Positions 2,035-17,608 of a stretch of 64,000 nt of DNA are shown here, in pieces. Below the pieces are notes generated by a model, which saw nothing but the letters and a program-made list of their open reading frames with translations, was not told where the DNA came from and searched no databases. The DNA comes from Asterias rubens. Its lineage: Eukaryota. The DNA lies in the NCBI RefSeq assembly GCF_902459465.1, contig NC_047083.1, forward strand, positions 992,001 through 1,056,000, read 5' to 3'. The stretch's first letter is position 1; every line of letters starts with the position of its first letter. A program made the translations under genes and the position numbers.

Positions 2035-4593
2035 TTAAGCGACAATTTAAACAGAAATGATGATGCTTGAATCTATGCATGGTGTGCATAGAAATTACTA
2101 TAACTAGTAAACTTGCAGGCTTATACAACCATAAGTTTAGCCTCTTTCGAGAGGAGTGTGTGGTCTGAAAAGAGCCTGTGTGGTCTCAATTGTTTTGAAC
2201 AGTTGAATCTACTTCTCCTGAAGACGAGCAGAGTATAAGTCTGGAATGAAACATCAAGACCGCACCAGCTGTGGTATTTGCCCAAAGTTCTTGCTTGTAA
2301 ACTCTGAGTTATATGCCTACATCTTTGCAAGACGTTCTAAATTTATCAGCCATTGAAACAGTAACCTTTGTGTTTAAAAGAACCAACATAATATGTCTTT
2401 ATTTAGTTTTGATTTTTTTCTTTAAACTGGTTGCAGAGTGATGCATCTATTTTATTATTACACATGTTTTTATATGTCATTCTTCATGAATTGCTTAGTA
2501 GTATTTTGCTATCATTAGTAGACTTAATCTTCACAGTTTTAAATTTTTACTAAATACTACAAAGTGTTGTTTTTTGTAAACAAAACAAAGTCTATGGTGC
2601 AGAAAAATTTGCCCTCTGTCACTAAACTTAATTTCTGCCACAATCTTTGCCATGTTTCCGGTATTCAGTACCAGTAATAAATGATAATACTCATTTCACA
2701 AAAAAAGAACCAGACTCTTTGTTCTTTCAGTCTCAGTTTGATTACACTTAATTGGATTGGAGTACAACAAGATCCAAGATGTTAAATGGTCAAGATGGGT
2801 TTTCCTACTGGAAAATTTACACGTTTTTTATGTCGGGTTGTGCTCAGTGGTCATGGGTAGTTGCGGCTGGCTGCCAAATGCACACTTGATCTCATCCTAA
2901 ATTTCCCATTGATTAGAAATCTTGAAAACATTTCTTATTCTTATACTTTATTTGAATCTGAGAAACAATTCATGCATGAATTCTTTTTCAGATTTCTGAG
3001 GATTGAGGTCCAGGCATTAATGCTGTGGCTACTGATGCAGTTTGTACACTCTTTTACCTTGCTAAATATGAAAATACCGGGACTTTTTTCTCTCTGTGTT
3101 CTCAGCAAATCAACACTGTTTTCGGTTGAACCTTCCACATGTGACTTGTATTTTTACTTGATATTTTTGCTAATAAATCAGAATATCATTAGCAAAAAAC
3201 AAATGGTCTTTATGTTTTTTGTAAATTTGTGTTTTTGGTTTTTTTTTGGAGCAATGTTCCCCATATAATTTTGAGCAGGGACAAACGTTCAATTTCTTCC
3301 AAAAACTTTTAAAGTGTGTATATTTTTATGTCCAAAGTTTTTTTTTTTAGCATTTTGCATTATTTACTATTTGCGAGTTGATTTATTGGTAGCGGCGGGT
3401 GCACCTCGCCCCATTGGGGGTGTTTGCCTGTCTTCAAGGCGTTCATGGCGGCATCAGCGGTTTCTGAATGGTTCCACTTTATGCATGCAATAGGTAGCTT
3501 TTAAAAGGGGTCTTTTAAATTTCCTTTCTTTGATGGTTGTCTTTGGCACCCCCCCCCCCCCCCGGATATTTCGTTGACGCTCTTTTCTTCTTCGTCTTCC
3601 GGTTGTTGCTAAGGACTCTTAATGCACCCCCCCCCCCCCCCCCCGATCCCTCGCCGCACAAAAAGTCATAGAGCTATCAATAATGCACAAAGTGCTTACT
3701 ACTAAACCTCTATTACTTTACGCCAGTTCATTTGCATGCATTGTATTATAGTACCAACTTCTATGCGAGCTTATCCACATACGTACAGAGGATTTTAATT
3801 GGATTATCGACCCTGTGTGACTCAATGGTTTATAATGTTTTGGCGGGAGTGGTGTGTTTTGACTTGCATTTTGTAGTCGGAGCAGTTTCCCCTTCTATGC
3901 TGGGAACACATTCATGACCGACATGACAAGCAATATTTCAGTCGATCCTACAGCGCCGTTGATCGCCGGCCGACCATCATCCTGCTAAAACAATAAAAGA
4001 CACTAAAGGTACGTAAAGTACACGTGGTGACCCAAGTAGACCGGGGAGAGGAAAACGGTTAGATATTTCCTACATTCACTCGTCTTGTTTCAGAGCAAGG
4101 TGCGACTATAAATATTAAGTGCCAAGTTACACCGTCCGGTTTGAGCTTCGTGGTGGATCAGTGGATGATCTCTGGATGATCTCTGGTACCATTGAGGGAA
4201 CTCCGTGGTGAGAGTACACAAATTAATAGAAACAATCCTGGGCTGGGTGTGCTATTATGCTGAGTGGCATACGCACACAGTGGACTTCACTGATGTAGAG
4301 CTTTTCACTCCTCTCCCAATCTCATCACTGTTCTGTCAGCATATCTTCACGGTCTCAGATAGACATGATATGATAGAGATCTTATTCTCCCTGCTTTTTA
4401 ATTGCATTTATGGGATTACTGTGACGGATTTTTAGGAAATTTGGGCAGACAGGTATTTCCCTGCCCCTCCAAAATAAAAACTGACTGAAAGTTTCAAACC
4501 TAAAATTGCTTAACAGCAAGAAAAAAGGTTTTAAATTTTTGGGGCCATTTCTGGAAAATTTGTCGACTATTGACGACTTCAGTTTTGAAAAAT

Positions 4594-6306
4594 ATGGAGA
4601 CTGGAAAAGAATTTGTTTGTGATGTTTGTGGAAAAGCCTTCTCATATGAATCCAAACTGATCACCCATCAGCGTGTCCACACTAAAGCGAAACCATTTGA
4701 CTGTGAAGTTTGTGGTAAAAGCTTCGCATCGAAAGGGTCAGTGACAGTTCATCAACGTGTCCACACTGGAGAGAAACCATTTGACTGTGACATATGTGGA
4801 AAAGCCTTCGCGGTAAAATCTCATGTGACAACCCATCGTCGTGTTCACACTGGAGAGAGACCGTATGCTTGTGATCTTTGTGGACAAGGTTTTGCGACGA
4901 AAGGTAACCTGCAACTTCATCATACGCGTAACCATACTTCAGAGAAACCGTTTGTTTGTGTTACTTGTGGCAAATCCTTTGCTGAAAAAATCCAACTTGT
5001 TAGACATCAGCGTGTTCGCACTGGAGAGAAACTGTTTAGTTGTGATGTTTGTGGAAAAGCATTCGCTGAATCTAAAGCTTTGAGAATACATCAGCGTATC
5101 CACACTGGAGAGAAACCATATATTTGTAATGTTTGTGGAAAAGCTTTCAGACAAAGTGGTTCCTTGAACACCCATCAGCTTGTCCACACTGGAGAAAAAC
5201 CATTTGACTGCGACGTTTGTGGTAAAGCCTTCTCGATAAAATTACATCTAAGACGCCATCAGCGTATCCACACTGGAGAGAAACCATTTGGTTGCGATGT
5301 TTGTGGAAAAGCTTTTCCACGGCAAGATGCTCTGGTAAATCATCAGCGTGTCCACACTGGAGAGAAACCATTTGGTTGTGATCTTTGTGGACAATTCTTC
5401 AAATGTAAAGCTTATGTGACCACCCATCAGCAGCTAGTCCACAATGGAGAGAAAGATTTTGCTTGTGAATTTTGTGGGAAATGTTTCGGGAGTAAAAGTT
5501 ACAGGGACATCCATCTGCGTCTTCACACCGGAGAGAAACCATATTGTTGTAACGTTTGCGGAAAAGCCTTCCCAATCAAAGGTAATTTGATCTCTCATCA
5601 GCGTGTCCACACAGAAGAGAAGCCTTTTGATTGTGATGTTTGTGGACAATTCTTCAAAACACAAGCTTATGTAATCGCCCATCAAGAGCGTGTCCACAGT
5701 GAAGAGAAAGGTTTTGCTTGTGAAATTTGTGGGAAATGTTTTGCTGATAAAACCCAACTTGTTAGACATCAGCGTGTTCGCACTGGAGAGAAACTGTTTA
5801 GTTGTGATGTTTGTGGAAAAGCATTCGCTGAATCTAAAGCTTTGAGAATACATCAGCATATCCACACTGGAGAGAAACCATATATTTGTAATGTTTGTGG
5901 AAAAGCTTTCAGACAAAGTGGTTCCTTGAACACCCATCAGCTTGTCCACACTGGAGAAAAACCATTTGACTGCGACGTTTGTGGTAAAGCCTTCTCGATA
6001 AAATTACATCTAAGACGCCATCAGCGTATCCACACTGGAGAGAAACCATTTGGTTGCGATGTTTGTGGAAAAGCTTTTTCACGGCAAGATGCTCTGGTAA
6101 ATCATCAGCGTGTCCACACAGAAGAGAAGCCTTTTGATTGTGATGTTTGTGGACAATTCTTCAAAACACAAGCTTATGTAATCGCCCATCAAGAGCGTGT
6201 CCACAGTGAAGAGAAAGCTTTTGCTTGTGAAATTTGTGGGAAATGTTTTGGAAGTAAAATTTCCAGGAACACCCATCACAAAATCCACGCTAAAAAGAGA
6301 CCATAA
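4594..6306 (+). CDS. ZNF-2: C2H2 zinc-finger protein, 20 fingers (two with the second His replaced by Arg)
   Basis: First ATG at 4594 (the ORF track starts at TTG 4570). The frame is open back to an acceptor at 4515-4516. Candidate 5' exons have donors at 4009 and 4208 (low confidence). Contains near-identical internal duplications. Confidence 0.92.
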   Translation: METGKEFVCDVCGKAFSYESKLITHQRVHTKAKPFDCEVCGKSFASKGSVTVHQRVHTGEKPFDCDICGKAFAVKSHVTTHRRVHTGERPYACDLCGQGFATKGNLQLHHTRNHTSEKPFVCVTCGKSFAEKIQLVRHQRVRTGEKLFSCDVCGKAFAESKALRIHQRIHTGEKPYICNVCGKAFRQSGSLNTHQLVHTGEKPFDCDVCGKAFSIKLHLRRHQRIHTGEKPFGCDVCGKAFPRQDALVNHQRVHTGEKPFGCDLCGQFFKCKAYVTTHQQLVHNGEKDFACEFCGKCFGSKSYRDIHLRLHTGEKPYCCNVCGKAFPIKGNLISHQRVHTEEKPFDCDVCGQFFKTQAYVIAHQERVHSEEKGFACEICGKCFADKTQLVRHQRVRTGEKLFSCDVCGKAFAESKALRIHQHIHTGEKPYICNVCGKAFRQSGSLNTHQLVHTGEKPFDCDVCGKAFSIKLHLRRHQRIHTGEKPFGCDVCGKAFSRQDALVNHQRVHTEEKPFDCDVCGQFFKTQAYVIAHQERVHSEEKAFACEICGKCFGSKISRNTHHKIHAKKRP

Positions 6307-7617
6307 TTTTTGTTAAATAAAAAAAATTATGGTCTCTGTTGTTGTGACGTTTGTGGAAGAGGGTTGGCAACTAGTGGTTACTTGGGGTCTCATCGGCGTG
6401 TCCACACTAGAAAGAAAACATTATGATTTTGACCATTTAGTGGAGAAACCTTTTCTTGTTGATAGTGTAACCTAACATGTCATCAGCAGCTTGTCCACAC
6501 CTGGGTCCAATTTCATGGCTCTGCTTGCCGTTAGCACAGAACCAGCGCTAATGGAAGCAGAGAATTTTGTATACATGCAAGCGTATTTCACAAGCAGCTA
6601 GTGGCGATTTTTGGCTTCTGCGCATGTGTACTAAACATTACTAGGCATTCTACGCTTACAAGGCTAGTGCAGAAATTCGGCATAGACACACAGAACTCTG
6701 AGATTGGATAATGGTGTCAAATCCAAGTTTTTGGTTGTTGTATAAATAAAATTTATTCACAAGTCTACACTTCTGAGAGATAATTTCTTTCTGACATTTT
6801 CTGGAAACCCCTTTAGCAGACCGTAACTCACAATTTAAGAATTTCAGGAAACTTAAAAGGCAACCCCAAAACAGAGACAATTTTTGACATTTGTGGGCTA
6901 AGCTTTTACAGGAAGAATTGTTGCAACTACCAACCAGTCAGGAGGCCATTATTGTCCAGAAATATTGTCATATTGATATTTTCTTTGAGTTAAAAAAAAA
7001 AAAAAAAAAATCCAATACAGTCAAGAGAGTCTTTTTGTTCGATGTGACATTTGTGGAAAAGCCTTCTCTTGACGACCACAAAGGAGAGTTCATACCGAAG
7101 TCAAACCTTTCGTGAACAAATACTGTATTATTTTTTCACTGGGGAGAGATAATGTCTTTGTGACTTTAAAAGCTTTTACACATTAAAACACAATGAAGAC
7201 CAGCAAAGGATCCAAACAGAAGCAAAGTTTTGATCCGATCAAATAAAAAAAGGTGTTTGTTGACCACAGTAATTTTTTGTTTGTTGATACATTTCAACAA
7301 AATGGCATAATCTATGCTTTAATTCGTTTAAACCCTGTGCTGATACCACTTTTGGTTACTAAAGTTGTAGACAATCTAGATGTGCAAGTGAATTAAACTG
7401 GGAAAAGAGGTTTTGAAGTCACTGTTAATTGACCACATCAACACCTTTTCATTATTTGTTAATTTTAACCCTTTTTTTTAAATATGTATTAGGTTTTGGT
7501 ATAAAATAATAATTTTGTCATTTAGGCCTAACTGTACATTTTTTTCTTTCTCAGTTTAAACTGTGTTGGCCTGTATTTCAAAGACTCATTTAGCTTGATC
7601 ACATCACATTTTCTTAA

Positions 7618-7945
7618 ACACACTGGACACCCTTTTGGTAATTGTCAAAGACCAGTCTTCTCACATGGTGTATCTCAACATTATACACAAAATAACAAAC
7701 CTGTGAAAATTTGAACTCAAGTGGTCATCGAAGTTTCAAACAAAATGCTTGTCACAGTAAGCTTTGTGCTTTCAGTGGTCTTTAAATCAAATTTGTGGAA
7801 AATAACTTCTTTCTCGAAAAATACGTTTCTTCACAGGGAGCCGTTTCTCACAAAGATTTATACTAGAAACTCTCAATTGCTCGTTACCAAGTAGGTTTTT
7901 ATGCCAACAAATATATTCAGTAATAACCAATAGTGTCCACTGCCT
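7618..7945. mobile_element. MITE K1 (Kolobok-like)
   Basis: Same body and TIRs as other K1 copies; TTAA on both sides. Confidence 0.8.
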
Positions 7946-8820
7946 TTAAGTGAAATCATGTGTGACTTTATTTTAATGAGCTCTATTTTTATATGTAGTG
8001 TGTAAGATTTGTGGAAACCATTGACTGTATTTTTGACCCCATGAGGGCGCTTTCAATGAATTTCTGTGCTTTTTGATGGTAGTTTTATCTAAAGGCCTGT
8101 CCGAACTGACGGCTACAGTCTACATGTACATCTAGTAGGAATTTGGAAGCACAAGGGAAGAGTGAGAAAAGTAGCTGAAACAATAGACTTGATGACAAGA
8201 AATTATCACTGCCCCCCCCCCCTCCCCCCAAACACATGTTGCGACTGACTCACACACATACTGGGATCGAGGGTGTGTGTACCGTCCCCGTAACCACTCC
8301 GCGCTAAACAATTACCGTCTTGACTTCAAGACTACTGAAACTAGAGAGCTAGGACACAAACCTCTGCAAGGGTCAAAACATCAAGCCTTAAACTTTTATT
8401 TGCTTTATAAATGTAAAATGTCATTTTGGTTAAGGGTAAGCGGTTTGCAATAACTAAATCTGTTTTCTTTTCTTTTTTTAAAGGAGTACTGTGTTATTTG
8501 TGTTAACTTGTATTTTAGTTTAGCTTTAAGTGCTTTCGGGTAATTTGATGTGTCGTTTTAACTGATAACATTTGTAGCAATTTAACTTTTGTACTAGAAA
8601 TACTTTTTTGAGTGAACCAAAAACAATAGTAGTCTAGTTATCCTGTGAGGATTTGTTTTGAAGAGAAATTATTTGTAATATAAAAGATGTCAGTAATTTT
8701 GACAAAGGAGACAGAAATAAAAACAATAGGATCAGGACTGACCTTTGTTCGGACTTTGATTTGTTTTGATGATTTAGACAAACCTCAGTATGAGGTGGGA
8801 AGGGAAGACTAATCTTGCTT

Positions 8821-9020
8821 GCCCCAATTTCAAAGAGCTGCTAAGCACACAAAAGTTTGCCTAGCATGAAATTTCTTCCTTGATAAAAAAAGAATTACCA
8901 ACCAAATTTCCCACAGATATGCAACATATAGAAATTTGATGGGTAATTTTGTTTTTATCAAGGAAGGAATGTCATGCTAAGGACATTTTTTGTGCTAAGC
9001 AGCTCTTTGAAAATGTGCCC
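8821..9020. mobile_element. MITE family P4 (GGCCCAATTTCA-type TIR)
   Basis: Inverted termini GCCCCAATTTCAAAGAGCTGCTAAGCAC / GTGCTAAGCAGCTCTTTGAAAATGTGCCC. Related copies start at about 6503, 22017, 57201 and 58561. Confidence 0.7.
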
Positions 9021-9533
9021 TCTGGTCTCTATTTTGTGATTTGAAAACCAGTACTCATCACTTATAGCATACAGGGAACGTGACACAGAGTAAGGTATAG
9101 AAATCAACTTAAAGAGTTTACGATGTAATGATGAATTTGAAGTTTTAGTGGACAATGCAATGTCATTATCAGCCTTCATTGTTTTGTTTTTCTAGCACTC
9201 TTTATTGGTCAGTTGTAAAGAACCTCAGGCCTTTAGATGGGAGTCCACATAATTAAGAAATAATTATGCACTAAACACAAACAGCTTTGTCAAAAATCTG
9301 TCAAGTAAAATTGTTGGCTCAAAGATAAAAACTGCATGTATTTTCCAAACTCCAGAGTCTCCACCAGGATATATCATCATCGGATGGTGTTTTTTCCTGT
9401 ACATATTATGTACCATCCTCAAACAAAATGTTCCCGATGTTTTAAATCGATTCATAACACAAAAGTTACCCATTGGGCGTATGCACTGTCTCCGCCCCTT
9501 TTATTAATTTCTCACTAAACGCAGAAATGCATA

Positions 9534-9654
9534 GAGGGCGCTGCTGCAAAGAGCTCAATTGATTAGAACGTTCTTTTTGTGTGTGCGTCGAGAAAGTGAT
9601 TGGTGGACTTGAAAACTTGTATTTTTCACACGTCTGTCGACAAGAATGGTAAGT
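9534..9654 (+). promoter_or_regulatory. ZNF-3 promoter / non-coding exon 1 cassette
   Basis: GAGGGCGCTGC at 9534, AGCTCAA at 9552, donor GTAAGT at 9649. Same order and similar motif-to-donor spacing as the ZNF-4 and ZNF-5 cassettes. Confidence 0.6.
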
Positions 9655-10798
9655 TATATTTTACAATGAAGTGCATAACTTTAAAAATTTTAAAACCGTG
9701 GTTTCTACTCGTTGATAGGCGTAATCAGTTGACTTTGATTTGAAGAAGAACGTAAAAATATGAACCGTTTTTTTTTTGTACGGTGGGAATATGCTGTACA
9801 TCATATTCCATAGAGGAAGGACTGTATTGTCACTTGTGTAAAGACAACTCGTCAGTCCATGGAGCGGTCAGTCGGCGGACAACTCGACGGTTTAGACAAC
9901 TCGACCTTCGATACAACTCGACGTGTGTATATTAGTTACGTCATCACATAATATTGATAGATAGAGTCCTAGCCTAGCTAGACTAGTTTCCAGTAAAAAA
10001 TTAATCTCATGTCAGACTCGAGTCAATGTGCTTAGTTAATTAAAGTTTACATTTATTTACATTATTTAATAATTATTATTAGTATTATAAATATTAGGGC
10101 CTATAATAATATATATGTCATGATTTAATTTTTGCGTGAACCTCCTCAAATTAATCAGAATTATTCAAGAGCTCAAAAACTCATCTAAATCTCTCAAGGT
10201 CAAGCACTCATTTTTGACGTGAAACTGAAAACAGTCCACATCCAACCATGGTCGGACATGATGGAGGGTCCATGATCCAACCAACATTCAACAACTCCAA
10301 ACCATACCAAAGGCTTAATAGCTTGACATTGTCATTTGTTCAAATTTGGGGAGAAATTCTACAATACAAGTTAAAGTAAGACTGCAGTTTGTTTAAATAT
10401 TTACTGGACCAATCATGTTTTTTGCCAGAGACTTGGGGGTCCATAGCCCCACTTGTGTGGCCAAGGATAGCTGAATCCTTAGATCCTTGCCCACACAAAT
10501 GGGGCTAGGGGGTCCAATATCACTAGTTAATTGTTGCCTACTCCTAGAACTTCTGGTTTTGTCCGGCTATCGTCTCCCGTACGGGAGACGATAGCCGGAC
10601 GAAACCGAAATAGTTCTAGTAGTAGTTGTTGCCCTCCTCCTTCGTCGGGTCTTTGTGAAACCCGTCCCTGTCTACCTAAACATGACAATACAGTCATCAA
10701 GTTTCCATTGAAAAAAAAAAACTTTACAAGTGGCTTCCAGAAAATTATTTGTCACCCATTTGACCAGTTCCGGACTGGTTGATTACTCTATGATTCAA

Positions 10799-10971
10799 TA
10801 GACCTTATGCACAGGACGTCATTTCAGAAGGGCGCCCTCACCTAGAGGTCAAAAGCAGGTTGTTCATTGGCCAAGTCTGTGCGCCGCGCGTACAAATCTG
10901 TTTGTTTCGATTGTTATGTCACCGTTTTACCTCTAAGATGTCAGCTGGATGACGTCAACGCATAAGGTCTA
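10799..10971. mobile_element. TAGACCTTATGC-TIR MITE in ZNF-3 intron 1
   Basis: TIR TAGACCTTATGC/GCATAAGGTCTA; inverted copy at 63273-63438. Confidence 0.75.
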
Positions 10972-11232
10972 TTCTCAACAAATTCTAAGATGAACATTTT
11001 ATTTTATTACAAAGAAGATTACAGGTTACAAAAACATGTAAAATTATCAAAACTAAACTAGGTTTATACTGTACCAACATATTCCATTTTGTATAGTGTA
11101 CCTTGATGACATCATTTTTAATATTTTTAATATTAATTACTATTTTAAATTTCCTTTCATTTGTACAGCTGGCAATACTTTTCCTCAGACTTTAGAGCCT
11201 GGCTTGACACTGAGTCTGTAAGACTAAGAGTT

Positions 11233-12666
11233 ATGAACAATAATGAAAGGATGGACAAGTTAGAAAGTGACATCCTGCTAGAAAGCGAATCAAGGCGTTG
11301 TCTGGTTGTGAACTTGGGAACCAAATTGAACGTTTCTGACCTTTGCAAAAAAGAGGAGAAAATGAATAATTTGCCTGGAGAGAAACCATTTGTTTGTCGT
11401 TTTTGTGGAAAAACCTTTTCACTCAAAGCTGTCCTGATAAACCATCATCGTATCCACACTGGAGAAAAATCGTTTGTTTGTGATGAATGTGGAAAAGCTT
11501 TCTTACGAAAAGGTAACCTGACAGTCCATCAGCGTATCCACACTGGAGAGAGACCATTTGTTTGTGATGTATGTGGTAAAGCTTTTTCAAATAAGAACAG
11601 CCTGGCACGTCATCAGGGTATCCACATTGGAGAAACAAAAATTGTTTGTGAACTTTGTGGTAAAGCCTTCTCAAAGAAAAACTACTTGACACAGCATCAG
11701 AAAGTCCATAGTCAGGGTAGAAAAAAAGCATTGAACTGTAGCTTTTGTGAAAAAGCTTTTTCAGCTAAATCGGATCTGAGGCGCCATCAGCTGGTCCACA
11801 CTGGAGAGACCAAAGAAGATCAGACAAACAATCATCAGGATGTCGAAACTGGAGCGAAACCACCTGTTTGTGATGTTTGTGGAAAAGCCTATTCAAGTAA
11901 ACGTGTCCTGAGACGCCATCAGCGTATTCACACTGCAGAGAAACCATTTGTTTGTGATATTTGTGGAAAAGCCTTCACACGAAAAGATGATCTGACAGTC
12001 CATCAGGGTACCCACACTGGGCTGAGACCCTTTGCTTGTGATATTTGTGGAAAAGCTTTCCTCCTTAAGTACAAGCTGGCACGCCATCAGCATATCCACA
12101 CTGGAGAAAAACCATTTGTTTGTGAACATTGTGGTACACACTTCTCGGCCAAAAGTAGCTTGAAAAGCCATCAGCGTATCCACACTGGAGAAAAACCATT
12201 TGTTTGTGACCTTTGTGGAAAACCTTTTTCAATGAAAAGTGACTTAACACGGCATCAGCAAGTCCACAGTCATAGAGAAAAACCCAAACCATTTAACTGT
12301 AGCTTTTGCGAAAAAACTTTTTCAGCTAAATCAGATCTGAAACGCCATCAGCGTTCCCACACTGGAGAGAAACCATTTAAATGTGACATCTGTGGAAAAT
12401 CATTCTCCGTTCATCCTAACTTGGTACGCCATCAGCGTTTCCACACGGGGGAGAAACCATTTCTTTGCGATGTTTGTGGAAAACACTACTCACGAAAAAG
12501 TAACCTGATTGGCCATAAGCTGGTCCACACTGGAGAGAAGCCATTTGTGTGCGATATTTGTGGAAAATTCTTTGCAAAAAAAAGTAACATGACGAGCCAT
12601 CAGCGTATCCACACTTCAGAGAAAACATTGCTTTTTGTGATTGGAGAAGAGCCTCCGCCTTTATAA
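11233..12666 (+). CDS. ZNF-3: C2H2 zinc-finger protein, 14 fingers, with N-terminal 34-aa module shared with ZNF-4
   Basis: Acceptor ttgtacAG at 11167-11168; first in-frame ATG at 11233. One finger core is deleted (TGETKEDQTNNHQDVETGAK). Non-coding exon 1 has donor GTAAGT at 9649. Confidence 0.92.
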   Translation: MNNNERMDKLESDILLESESRRCLVVNLGTKLNVSDLCKKEEKMNNLPGEKPFVCRFCGKTFSLKAVLINHHRIHTGEKSFVCDECGKAFLRKGNLTVHQRIHTGERPFVCDVCGKAFSNKNSLARHQGIHIGETKIVCELCGKAFSKKNYLTQHQKVHSQGRKKALNCSFCEKAFSAKSDLRRHQLVHTGETKEDQTNNHQDVETGAKPPVCDVCGKAYSSKRVLRRHQRIHTAEKPFVCDICGKAFTRKDDLTVHQGTHTGLRPFACDICGKAFLLKYKLARHQHIHTGEKPFVCEHCGTHFSAKSSLKSHQRIHTGEKPFVCDLCGKPFSMKSDLTRHQQVHSHREKPKPFNCSFCEKTFSAKSDLKRHQRSHTGEKPFKCDICGKSFSVHPNLVRHQRFHTGEKPFLCDVCGKHYSRKSNLIGHKLVHTGEKPFVCDICGKFFAKKSNMTSHQRIHTSEKTLLFVIGEEPPPL

Positions 12667-13356
12667 ATAAACTAGACCTCTCTTCTACATGGTTTATTTT
12701 CAGATTGTGACGTAATCTACGTTTCAAAAGGTCATAACTTTTGAACCAATAAATAAATCTTGTTGTATGCTCTTTTTCAGCTAGGTATAAAACCCACCAA
12801 GTGTTAGAAATGGCATCATTTCGACATTTTATACCTTAAATTTGTATCCAAGTTTAAGACTTTTTTGTAAGTGATGACTCTCACCCCTGCATATAAAAAC
12901 CCAAACTGAAGCCAAGACAAAATTACAGTTTATGAACAAACCATCATTTAGAGTAAGTAAATCATCATTAAGAGACAGTTAAAATTCTTGCATCAAACTT
13001 TTGGCTGCTTGTACATACATTGTAGTTCACAATTAATGCACTGAAATGTTTCAACTTTTAAATGATATTTAATTTATGTTCTCCATTTGCATGTAGTGTG
13101 TAAGATTTGTAAAAACCAATGTTTGTATTTTGGACACACGAGGGCTCTTTGTATTTTCAAAAGCAAACTACTGGAGTGCTTCTGAATATTTGTAGCTAGA
13201 GCTGCATTATGGCTCTGGCTAGATGACATGGCATTCTGCAGTAATGTGAATTCTTATAACAACAGTCAAAGCCACTCTGGTAGCTACCAATAAGCCATTT
13301 TTGCATGTTACATATTTTAAAATGTTTGTTACAATGAATGTTTGGTTACAACAAAT

Positions 13357-13565
13357 TTGAATTCCTCAGACTATCGAGATACATGTTGCATGATTAGGCG
13401 CAAGCTTTTGCTTAGTTGCGTAAGAGACCGTGAACACCTATGGATGATTCTGAATTGATGCGTATGGCACAGCGGTACCATGGTCTGCTTATCTGGAGGT
13501 TGCTATACAAAGCTTGCCCCAAAACATTTGACATAGCAAATGTCTCTATAGTCTGAGGAACTCAA
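13357..13565. mobile_element. MITE with TTGAATTCCTCAGACTAT-type TIR
   Basis: Terminal inverted repeats of about 22 bp (TTGAATTCCTCAGACTATCGAGA / TCTCTATAGTCTGAGGAACTCAA). Confidence 0.6.
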
Positions 13566-14261
13566 GATGTAAGATATACATTGTGTTTAAACAAGTCATT
13601 CAAGATTAACGTGCAAATGGCTCATTCAGATACTACCGGGTGCGTACATGTAACGCTCTTGTATCAATGATAAAAAGTTGTTCTAATAATAATAGTGAAA
13701 AAACATTATTTGTTATAAAATGAAGTTATTTTGGATGAGTTGATAAATAATGAGTCGGAAATAAAACCAATGGGAATCAACAGAAAAAACTTTTGTTTGG
13801 ATGTTGCTTGGTTGGATTCTGAAAGCATGGACTAGTCTGGTCTCTAGTTGTGTTTTGAAAACCAGTATTCATCATTGATGTACCAAACGGGGAACATGAT
13901 TCTTACAGAGCATATAAACATGAACTTTTTCTGAAAAGTGAAGCCTGGTTTATACATCCTGCAAACGCGAAGCAAATGTTGGATGTCACTAACTCGCAAT
14001 TAGTCATATTTTGCTAGATTGAGTGTTGCTCAACTCTCTTGGGAATTCGCATCGAAAACAGAGTTTTGACGTCACTTTCACGTCAAATTTGATGCGCATC
14101 TGTATTTGCGTGAAGTTAAAAACCGGGCTTAGCGTTGTCAGATGCTTCTCTTAAACTTTGGTTGGATGGGGAGAAGGAGTCGAGTCATGCATCCCCTGGT
14201 AATTGAAAAACATAGGCCGTAGCAATGTTTTTCTTTCTTTTATAGCGTCCAGGTTTATGGG

Positions 14262-14600
14262 TCCAGCCGTCAATTTCACCAAACTCTTCCTAACTTAGGA
14301 TTAATCTTAGGACTTAGGACGGGTTCAGTTCCGTATCCAAATACGTAGGACGCATTGAACTCATCCCAAGTTAGGACGGGTTACTCGTCCTAACTAGAAT
14401 TAGGATTGATCCTAGCGTTTCGTGAAATCGGCTGCAGGGGTGGATTTCACAAAGAGTTAGGACTAGTCTTATCTTGAGTTGGGACCAATTACTTGTCCTA
14501 ACTTAGGACTATCCATGCAATTTGTATATCTCCTAGGACTAGTCTTAAGTTATGACTAGTCTAAGTTTGGACTAGTCCAAACTCTTTGTGAAATCCACCC
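14262..14600. mobile_element. Adjacent MITEs P2 (about 14262-14434) and P1 (14438-14600)
   Basis: P1 has TIR GGGTGGATTTCAC/GTGAAATCCACCC with CAG on both sides. P2 is an inverted copy of 1466-1638. Confidence 0.78.
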
Positions 14601-15050
14601 CAGGCACTAGGAGGGATCACAGAAAAGTTCCTGTATCCTGTCTTGACTTTTTTCATTTGTTTTGAAATGAAAAAAGTGTTTAATTGATATTAATTTTTAT
14701 AACAATTTTGTGAAAATGGTGGCTGGATACTGGCTGGAATGTTTCCCGGGATCAAACCATAGAGCAAGAACCAAACAAACCCCATAATTAAACCAAACAA
14801 CTTTGTCAAAAAAACTGTCCCTTGGGCTTATTTAAGCTGGGGCAATTATTTTCTAAACATGTCCTGACACGCCCCCTCCACCGATCCTAAAACCTCTCTC
14901 ATCTACCGTGCAACCAACCTCGTCACCATGGTTAACTTTATTTTTAACCATGCATGAAACAGATATTGCAGTACTGCTCGACCCTCCATGTGGACGAGGT
15001 TGCCGCACGCCATGTCGTCCGTGTCGTCACGTCAGCATATACCATATATA

Positions 15051-15173
15051 GAGGGCGCTGCAAATCAAGAAGCAAGATCTTGTTTCAGTGAGCTCAACTT
15101 ATAATATTAGCAGTCTCCTTTTCCCTTGAAAGACACAATTCGGGATACAGTGTATAAACATCTAAGGGTAAGT
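15051..15173 (+). promoter_or_regulatory. ZNF-4 promoter / non-coding exon 1 cassette
   Basis: GAGGGCGCTGC at 15051, AGCTCAA at 15091, donor GTAAGTTCAGTTTCTC at 15168. Confidence 0.6.
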
Positions 15174-16378
15174 TCAGTTTCTCAACAACTTGGTGCATAG
15201 CATAAAACCCTTTGAAAGTTTGATACTGTTGTCATCCTTTTATCCTATCTATCTAGTCCTAGCAAGGGAGGTAGAACTAAAGTTTCTAAAGAAAGGGATA
15301 ACTTTCCGTATGCCAATGGCGCCACCACTTTTTCACTCTTTTTTACAAAAAGGGATATCTCATTGAGGTAAATTAGATACTGGGTTTGTTCGTTCAGCTT
15401 CCCTGGGTCGACCCCGGTGTGTAGCGGTTTTTTTTTCTAGGACGAACGTGGGTTGTTAATATTATCTGCACACGTTCGTCCTGAAAAAAACCGCCACACA
15501 CCGGATTCGACCTGGGGAAGCTAAACGAACGCACCCTATATTATTTCATATCGGATGAAAAAGTGGTGGCGCCTTATGGAAACTTTTCAGAAAAGAGGAG
15601 GATGAGGGCCTTAAGCCCTTACCTAGGCCTATTTATAGACCCAGTAAAAGTGCAGTCACTGGGATGGGGCGCTGTACTCCTTTTTCAAAATTTTGACATT
15701 ATCTGTTGTATGACCGAAAATGTCAAAATTCAAAAAAAGGAGTACAGCGCCCCAGTAATACTGGGTGCCTGGGTCTAGCCTATTTACTATTTTCAAGATG
15801 GCTGCTTAGTATTTCAAATCAAACATGCCACCAGTCCAATTATTTAGTTTGAACCCATCGCAAACTTGTTTTATACCCGAGGAGCTGTGTTAACACTAAA
15901 AACCTGACTACACCAGGGTCGGATTACACTAAAAAAGATTTGCTGGTCATGCTGGTAGGCATTCACTACTTCTAGAAACTATAAAGGCTCCTCACGGGGA
16001 GCCTTGATATTTTCTAGAAGTAGGCGTTCACTAAATATTGTTTCATGAAACAGACGGTTACAAGTGTTTGAGAGCATTGCGTTAGATTTTCTTTTGTTTT
16101 ACAAAAAACGAAAGATAACACATAATAAAAAAAAAAGGATGCAGACAGGGAACGGGGACGATCAACTGTTTTTTATTTTATTTGGCTTAACCTGTAACTG
16201 TTATCTCTTCCTTGGTCCATCTTGCTCTAAGGTTATGGTCATTATTTAACCTGCAGGCGTGAATTGCCATGAAGCAATTTAAGTCTGTCAAAAGAAAAGG
16301 CTTTTGAACTTTTAAATCCCTTTGTCTACCCCTCTGCAGGTTAATGGTATAGTCCAGGTGTTGCTTGAGACAAACGTG

Positions 16379-17608
16379 ATGGAGAAGTTAGCAAGTGACA
16401 TCTTGCTAGAAAGCATTCAAAGGCGTTGTCTGTCCGTGAGCTTAGGAACAAAATTGACCGTGTCTGAACTTTGTAGAAAAATAAATCAGACAGACCAACA
16501 GCATGACCAAACTGGACCCTTTGTTGGTGATCTGTGTGGAAAAGCTTTCCCAACTGAGGCTAAGAGGACAGTCCATCAGCAAATCCACACTGGAGAGAAG
16601 CCATTTGTTTGTGATTTTTGTGGGAAATCCTTCTCACGCAATAGTAATCTAACACAACATCATCTGGTCCACACTAATAAGAAACCTTTTGTTTGTGACA
16701 TTTGTGGAAGATTCTTCTCACAAAAATGTAACCTGACCACCCATCAGCTGATTCACACTGGCGAGAAACCTTTTGTTTGTGACATTTGTGGAAAATCCTT
16801 CCCACAAAAAATTCGCCTGTCATACCATAAGCTAGTTCACACTGGAGAGAAATTTTTTTGCGATATTTGTGGAAAATCCTTCTTTAAAAAATGTAACCTG
16901 ACACGCCATCAGCTGGTCCACACTGGCGAGAACGAGAATCCTTTTGTTTGTGATGTTTGTGGAAAATCCTTCTCGCGTAAATGTTACCTGACCAGCCATC
17001 ACGTGGTCCACACTAGCGAGAAACCTTTTGTTTGCGTCATTTGTGGAAAATCCTTCTCACGAAAAAGTAACCTGACATACCATAAGCTGGTTCACACTGG
17101 AGAGAAGCCATTTGTGTGCGACATTTGTGGAAAATCCTTCGCACGAAAAAGTCACCTTACATGCCATAAGCTGCTGCACACTGGAGAGCAGCCATTTGTT
17201 TGCGATATTTGTGGACAATCTTTCTCACATGAAAGTAACCTGACATGCCATAAGCTGGTCCACACTGGAGAGAAGCCATTTTTTTGCGATAAATGTGGAA
17301 AATCCTTCTCACGACAAAGTAACATGACACGCCATAAGCTGGTTCACACTGGAGAGAAGCCATTTGTGTGCGACATTTGTGGAAAATCCTTCCCACGAAA
17401 AAGTCACCTGACATGCCATAAGCTGCTTCACTCTGGAGAGCAGCCATTTGTTTGCGATATTTGTGGAAAATCCTTCTCAATTAAACGTAACCTAACACGC
17501 CATCAGCTGGTCCATACAGGAGAGAAGCCATATGTTTGTGATATTTGTGGAAAATCCTTAGCAAATAAATATAATCTAACACGCCATCAGCTGGTCCACA
17601 CACATTGA
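16379..17608 (+). CDS. ZNF-4: C2H2 zinc-finger protein, 12 intact fingers plus 1 degenerate (C to G), with shared N-terminal module
   Basis: Acceptors ctgcAG at 16255-16256 and 16338-16339; first ATG at 16379. Exon 1 donor GTAAGT at 15168. Confidence 0.92.
   Translation: MEKLASDILLESIQRRCLSVSLGTKLTVSELCRKINQTDQQHDQTGPFVGDLCGKAFPTEAKRTVHQQIHTGEKPFVCDFCGKSFSRNSNLTQHHLVHTNKKPFVCDICGRFFSQKCNLTTHQLIHTGEKPFVCDICGKSFPQKIRLSYHKLVHTGEKFFCDICGKSFFKKCNLTRHQLVHTGENENPFVCDVCGKSFSRKCYLTSHHVVHTSEKPFVCVICGKSFSRKSNLTYHKLVHTGEKPFVCDICGKSFARKSHLTCHKLLHTGEQPFVCDICGQSFSHESNLTCHKLVHTGEKPFFCDKCGKSFSRQSNMTRHKLVHTGEKPFVCDICGKSFPRKSHLTCHKLLHSGEQPFVCDICGKSFSIKRNLTRHQLVHTGEKPYVCDICGKSLANKYNLTRHQLVHTH

Follow-up and report, generated by a model that had tools for sequence, protein, structure and literature searches.

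We analysed a 64-kb window of the Asterias rubens genome (NC_047083.1, positions 992,001-1,056,000, forward strand). The window contains no N, and all coordinates below are positions in it. Translation confirmed that the same 34-residue peptide, hereafter the module, opens two neighbouring zinc-finger genes of this starfish, named here ZNF-3 and ZNF-4. In both genes the module shares the reading frame of the fingers and has a well-placed ATG at its start, and it is transcribed and spliced. No relative was detected elsewhere in the collections searched.

The two copies are identical at 83 of 102 nucleotides (nt), or 81%, and at 25 of 34 amino acids, with no indels (tblastn E = 5e-13). Fourteen codons differ, five of them only synonymously and nine non-synonymously. 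The similarity starts 2 nt 5' of the ATG and ends at codon 34, and on both sides of this segment the alignment looks random. A first-pass annotation of the sequence had reported the amino acid identity without net indel, the five synonymous differences and the unalignable flanks; all of these were reproduced when both copies were translated and recounted. When the regions upstream of ZNF-3 and ZNF-4, taken up to each ATG, were compared by blastn, nothing but two short distant blocks was returned. No further full copy of the module was found in the window by tblastn or by nhmmer with a nucleotide profile. The features of both genes are listed in Table 1.

Table 1. Coordinates of the module copies and of the surrounding parts of ZNF-3 and ZNF-4
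Feature	Position	Strand	Remarks
Module copy 1	11251..11352	+	opening 34 codons of the ZNF-3 reading frame, with the conserved ATG as codon 1; translation checked
Module copy 2	16379..16480	+	first 34 codons of ZNF-4; translation checked
ZNF-3 finger-exon acceptor AG	11167..11168	+	preceded by a pyrimidine tract and CAG; exon starts at 11169
ZNF-3 exonic leader	11169..11250	+	82 nt; open in frame; extra in-frame ATG at 11233; not conserved with ZNF-4
ZNF-3 spacer, module to first finger	11353..11394	+	short; not alignable with the ZNF-4 spacer
ZNF-3 finger array	11395..12666	+	14 C2H2 fingers in blocks of 5 and 9, plus stop codon
ZNF-3 mid-linker, site of relic copy	11800..11868	+	between finger blocks 1-5 and 6-14
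ZNF-4 finger-exon acceptor AG	16338..16339	+	preceded by a pyrimidine tract and CAG; exon starts at 16340
ZNF-4 exonic leader	16340..16378	+	39 nt; not alignable with the ZNF-3 leader
ZNF-4 spacer	16481..16516	+	Gln/Thr/Asp-rich; collinear with the ZNF-3 mid-linker
ZNF-4 finger array	16517..17608	+	defective first finger, then 11 regular fingers, stop codon

Gene structure and transcripts

Both genes qualify as C2H2 poly-zinc-finger genes, with tandem fingers (14 and 11 regular ones) and TGEKP-type linkers. The Pfam families zf-C2H2 (1.8e-78 and 1e-67) and zf-H2C2_2 (1.6e-101 and 6.7e-85) match the two genes. The first finger of ZNF-4 (16517-16600) has Gly in place of the first zinc-binding Cys and probably does not work as a finger. 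In both genes the module lies within the large spliced finger exon and not at the 5' end of this exon, which corrects the earlier annotation.

The acceptors of this exon are seen in RNA contigs. At ZNF-3, contigs from two runs of the same species and one run of a sister species (about 3.4% diverged over the exon, 27 mismatches in 800 bases) match from 11168, with 59, 62 and 29 unmatched bases ahead of this position. At ZNF-4, one sister-species contig matches from 16339 and is preceded by 103 unmatched bases. Use of the acceptors by contigs with unmatched 5' bases implies at least one upstream exon in both genes. Several distinct contigs of the sister species are 90-95% identical to the ZNF-4 module region; in two of them the match does not begin until 16369, directly after another AG. 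These additional contigs hint at further module copies or at an alternative acceptor.

A candidate upstream exon of ZNF-4 was observed at 16064-16231. Positions 16064-16222 are covered by a short RNA contig of the sister species, AAG/GT at 16231/16232 could serve as a donor, and an ATG-started frame in this segment would enter the ZNF-4 exon (16340) in frame. It is a candidate, with no spliced contig joining it to the finger exon.

The context of the module ATG is strong in both genes, with A at -3 and G at +4 in ZNF-3 and G at both positions in ZNF-4. ZNF-4 has no other in-frame ATG ahead of its fingers. The public gene call for this gene (409 amino acids), whose product an exact look-up placed on assembly GCA_902459465.3, and the ESM Atlas record both begin exactly at the module ATG. 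The ZNF-3 copy of the module is covered by RNA contigs of two same-species runs with 0-1 mismatches. The frame from the module to the fingers is kept in both genes despite the different lengths of the spacers.

Searches for relatives

The module had been described earlier as unrecognised, and our searches agree with this. For the N-terminal 73-80 residues, Pfam gave no match up to E = 10. A word-indexed search for the module region in a protein collection clustered at 90%, with a full-length and a 105-residue query, returned nothing. Vertebrate zinc-finger proteins dominated the output of the full-length search, and the gene's own model was missing from it, which fits the merged 1100-residue gene call considered below. 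A profile search of 1.84 billion representative proteins produced one spurious repeat protein and no relative; clustering of the representatives at 50% identity could hide finger proteins carrying the module, and these negatives are weak. Scans of metagenome and viral contigs found no relative of the module, and its ESM Atlas neighbours were generic zinc-finger clusters with scores at chance level. No paper on N-terminal domains of sea-star zinc-finger proteins was found in the literature.

A conserved RNA element over the module is unlikely, as the folding of the two copies is no better than that of dinucleotide shuffles (z = -0.13 and +0.40) and there is no overlap with any Rfam family. The RNA depth over the ZNF-3 module is single-copy-like, unlike that of the adjacent repeats, and thus the module does not belong to a mobile element.

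The closest known analogue in kind, likened here by description only, is FiNZ of cyprinid fish (bioRxiv 10.1101/2022.11.29.518450). Both peptides are short, lineage-restricted and N-terminal, both occur on poly-C2H2 genes of tandem clusters, and both are unlike known domains. However, FiNZ (28 amino acids) is encoded by a separate exon and is strongly conserved in hundreds of genes, and knock-down experiments give evidence that it silences mobile elements (bioRxiv 10.1101/2022.11.29.518450). On the other hand, the sea-star module is encoded on the finger exon, is represented by two full copies and one relic, is weakly constrained, and has only a putative function. It also resembles the N-terminal leaders of subfamilies in tandem gene families generally, where the coding start outlasts untranslated regions and spacers between paralogues. 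From such ordinary leaders it is distinguished by nothing except its very sharp boundaries and the relic copy.

A relic third copy in ZNF-3

In both RNA runs of the sister species, the mid-linker of ZNF-3 contains 30 extra in-frame bases after 11806. This insertion encodes the C-terminal end of the module, and 18 of 19 nucleotides match the 3' end of the ZNF-4 module. The match is followed by short collinear matches between the ZNF-3 mid-linker and the ZNF-4 spacer. The piece missing from A. rubens at 11806/11807 is flanked by direct AGACC repeats. Thus a 30-base in-frame deletion in A. rubens removed the last remnant of a second module of ZNF-3.

Given the relic copy in the mid-linker, we read ZNF-3 as probably a fusion of two neighbouring module-bearing units. 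The second module would have been truncated at the fusion, and its remnant would have been deleted later in A. rubens. The relic also indicates that the module belonged to the ancestral gene unit, and so would be older than the split of the three units represented by the ZNF-3 start, the ZNF-4 start and the relic itself.

Other features of the locus

Two pairs of similar non-coding islands were found in the same order upstream of ZNF-3 and ZNF-4 (7993-8053 and 13091-13150; 9021-9083 and 13836-13899). They are 61-65 nt long and 82-84% identical, and the preceding gene's 3' transcript includes the first pair. These islands could be shared 3' untranslated or regulatory elements of the duplication unit. 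We did not adopt them as the missing first exon, as the donor sites are not conserved and one block is in the 3' transcript of the preceding gene.

Very high-copy short repeats occupy 10720-10950, 14263-14600, 15397-15521 and 15662-15759, with summed RNA contig depths of 10^4-10^5. Some of them resemble miniature inverted-repeat elements in being hairpin-like and in matching unrelated families of miRNA precursors below threshold. Inverted copies of a single element are suggested by a contig that links 10899 to 14439 on the opposite strand. Within the upstream zinc-finger gene, about 760 bases are duplicated in tandem (4739-5497 and 5501-6259, 87% identity), so that a block of about nine fingers is present twice.

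The module as a probable leader peptide

It seems fairly probable that the module is a translated, lineage-restricted leader peptide originating from an old, tandemly duplicated zinc-finger gene unit, and that it is under at most moderate constraint. Several observations lead to this reading. Firstly, the module is sharply bounded, starts at an ATG in a strong context, and keeps its frame to the fingers. Secondly, RNA contigs cover the ZNF-3 copy, and the public records of ZNF-4 start at the module ATG. Finally, dN/dS is below 1 in both comparisons made (see below), and FiNZ sets a precedent.

The ancestral unit would have consisted of an upstream exon, probably non-coding, an intron and one large exon. 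The latter would have begun with a short leader, followed by the ATG and the 34-residue peptide, and continued through a Gln/Thr/Asp-rich spacer into the finger array. Its traceable descendants would be the three units named above. The module would be translated as the N-terminal leader of a small subfamily and experience at most moderate purifying selection. Most likely, it would act as a short, partly hydrophobic contact or localisation peptide rather than as a folded domain. An effector role, though possible, is unsupported.

Selective constraint

Non-synonymous (dN) and synonymous (dS) divergence was calculated by the method of Nei and Gojobori. The module has dN 0.175, dS 0.376 and dN/dS 0.47 between ZNF-3 and ZNF-4, and dN 0.052, dS 0.096 and dN/dS 0.54 between A. 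rubens and the sister species. Both ratios are below 1, but neither departs from 1 significantly (binomial p 0.07-0.21); calculation of the first, between paralogues, had been proposed in the first-pass annotation. For the fingers of ZNF-3, the comparison between species gives dN 0.019, dS 0.056-0.105 and dN/dS 0.18-0.33.

Between the paralogues, the synonymous and non-synonymous differences in the module are 0.30 and 0.16, at the 81% identity given above. The finger pairs of ZNF-3 and ZNF-4 have a median identity of 67% and a synonymous difference of 0.52, and the non-synonymous difference of the best-matching pairs is 0.12-0.31. The non-synonymous difference of the module is therefore at the level of the best-kept finger pairs. 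The module is better kept than its flanks and about on par with the finger scaffold; as evidence of selection at the protein level this is weak.

A number of observations, together with the lack of significance, weigh against the leader reading. The differences between the paralogous modules are distributed over the three codon positions as 4/7/8. Between the species the module has accumulated six changes in 102 nt, of which four are non-synonymous (E13G, C17R, T24I, L31H) and two synonymous, and its dN is 0.052, against 0.019 for the fingers. Among these changes, C17R, T24I and L31H affect residues common to both paralogues and are placed in the sister lineage by comparison with ZNF-4. The full module is present in two of the five poly-zinc-finger reading frames of the window and is absent from the other three. 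A single-sequence AlphaFold model of the module shows a weak hairpin and a short helix at low confidence (predicted local distance difference test score, pLDDT, 52-61). The upstream exons, which were not recovered, may contain an upstream start codon. Finally, a public gene call of 1100 amino acids starts upstream of 6379 and ends at the ZNF-3 stop codon (12666), making the ZNF-3 module internal.

Alternatively, the module may have no function of its own and be no more than that part of an old tandem duplication which decayed most slowly or was homogenised most recently. The flanks could have been scrambled by indels and turnover of mobile elements, or the module could be a short gene-conversion tract between the paralogues. 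We regard such a remnant as a serious rival to the leader reading, although on balance a doubtful one. It agrees with the insignificant dN/dS and the absence of a codon-position bias. Moreover, between the species the module evolves faster than the fingers and at about the rate of the exonic leader, losing residues shared by the paralogues. The two non-coding intergenic islands are as similar as the module, the third copy was deleted without harm, and the region is rich in very high-copy repeats. However, in both genes the boundary of similarity coincides exactly with the ATG, and the module has stayed in frame with the fingers; under gene conversion, only chance would have placed the end of the tract at the start codon. 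The non-synonymous difference is also about half of the synonymous one, and as low as in the best-kept finger pairs.

Position of the ZNF-3 copy

The first-pass annotation had described the module as N-terminal. In ZNF-4, where the public gene call starts at the module ATG, it does lie at or next to the N-terminus. For ZNF-3 this position is insecure, as the 1100-residue call includes upstream sequence. The module of ZNF-3 could be an internal linker of a longer protein, formed by splicing of the upstream zinc-finger gene (4570-6306) onto the ZNF-3 exon, so that only ZNF-4 would have the module at a true N-terminus. This we hold to be unlikely. Apart from the public call itself, which ends at the ZNF-3 stop, it is favoured by the uninterrupted frame of 1045 amino acids that results from joining 4594-6253 to 11189, and by the open frame between the acceptor and the ATG. 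The relic copy would be a precedent for such fusions at this locus, and the faster protein change of the ZNF-3 copy would fit the loss of an N-terminal function.

However, RNA contigs of three runs use the acceptor at 11168/9 and not the one at 11189, and joining 6253 to 11169 shifts the frame and leads to a stop after 17 codons. The contigs with only 59-62 upstream bases have ends that are 3 bases apart between runs and look like transcript ends. Further, the exonic leader of ZNF-3 differs from that of the sister species by three substitutions, all of them non-synonymous if read in frame, and this is the pattern expected of untranslated sequence. Thus the ZNF-3 copy is probably N-terminal, and the 1100-residue call probably merges ZNF-3 with the preceding zinc-finger gene. 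Reconstruction of the exons of this call was given up, as there were no two-exon solutions and 201 three-exon solutions. Exact look-ups found no record of the ZNF-3 product from either ATG, nor of the products of the two upstream zinc-finger genes.

The LxVxL motif

The first-pass annotation had read the module as a KRAB-independent effector recruiting HP1 or another co-repressor through an LxVxL motif. Both copies indeed keep this motif (LVVNL in ZNF-3, LSVSL in ZNF-4), and LxVxL is a documented variant of the motif binding the HP1 chromoshadow domain, as was shown for KDM2A (PMC5388433). The core L18-x-V20-x-L22 has been retained amid changes in neighbouring residues, both in the two paralogues and in the orthologue of the sister species, and residues 18-22 satisfy the HP1 core pentamer, hydrophobic-x-[VI]-x-hydrophobic. 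Basic residues (Arg15, Arg16, Lys25) flank the motif. In a comparison by eye, the module fits 13 of 14 positions of an extended consensus (PMC12526061), which describes Drosophila HP1a and is not decisive for a sea star.

Nevertheless, recruitment of a co-repressor in this way is very improbable. At the failing consensus position, +4, the module has Thr (Ile in the sister species), whereas the consensus calls for K, R, L or N. The motif is not long enough to be specific: LxVxL arises in 7-11% of composition-matched shuffles, and bare pentamers of this kind match more than 50% of a proteome (PMC12526061). The overall constraint is weak, with dN/dS not significantly below 1 and residues shared by the paralogues replaced. 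Thus, whereas the motif itself was correctly assigned in the annotation, the effector role built on it is not supported, and binding is putative. Direct recruitment of HP1 through LxVxL is possible, and is the least supported step. Still a little less probable is the most specific form of this proposal, in which the module would be a sea-star-own N-terminal effector peptide of a clustered poly-zinc-finger subfamily, tethering the finger array directly to HP1 via LxVxL without a TRIM28-like adaptor.

The least likely identity of all, a degenerate remnant of the C-terminal half of the KRAB A-box (MLENY..LVSLG..KPD), is close to refuted: the partner-recruiting KRAB is likewise N-terminal on clustered poly-zinc-finger genes, and a profile of 28 vertebrate KRAB domains aligns residues 7-41 of ZNF-4 at 4.3 bits (reached by 12 of 2000 shuffles) in a faint likeness to the MLENY..LVSLG end, but ZNF-3 scores 2.2 bits (reached by 123 of 2000), hhalign gives a probability of 0.6% with 43 of 300 column shuffles scoring as well, Pfam KRAB (PF01352) has no match up to E = 10, nothing corresponds to the first half of the A-box, and, unlike KRAB with its separate exon, the module shares one exon with the fingers, the acceptors lying 82 and 39 nt before the ATG.

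Implications

To our knowledge, most invertebrate poly-zinc-finger expansions have no recognised effector domain. If the module were a sea-star-specific effector peptide, a counterpart of KRAB in tetrapods and of FiNZ in carp-like fish, it would be a further independent answer, alongside KRAB, ZAD and FiNZ, to how such proteins act on chromatin. If, moreover, it tethered the fingers to HP1, heterochromatin would be reached in a single step, with no need for a TRIM28-like adaptor. On present evidence, it is a small, weakly constrained leader peptide found in two genes and one relic. Its value is mainly as a marker for the duplication and fusion of units in the zinc-finger cluster, and as a cheap candidate for a repression assay.

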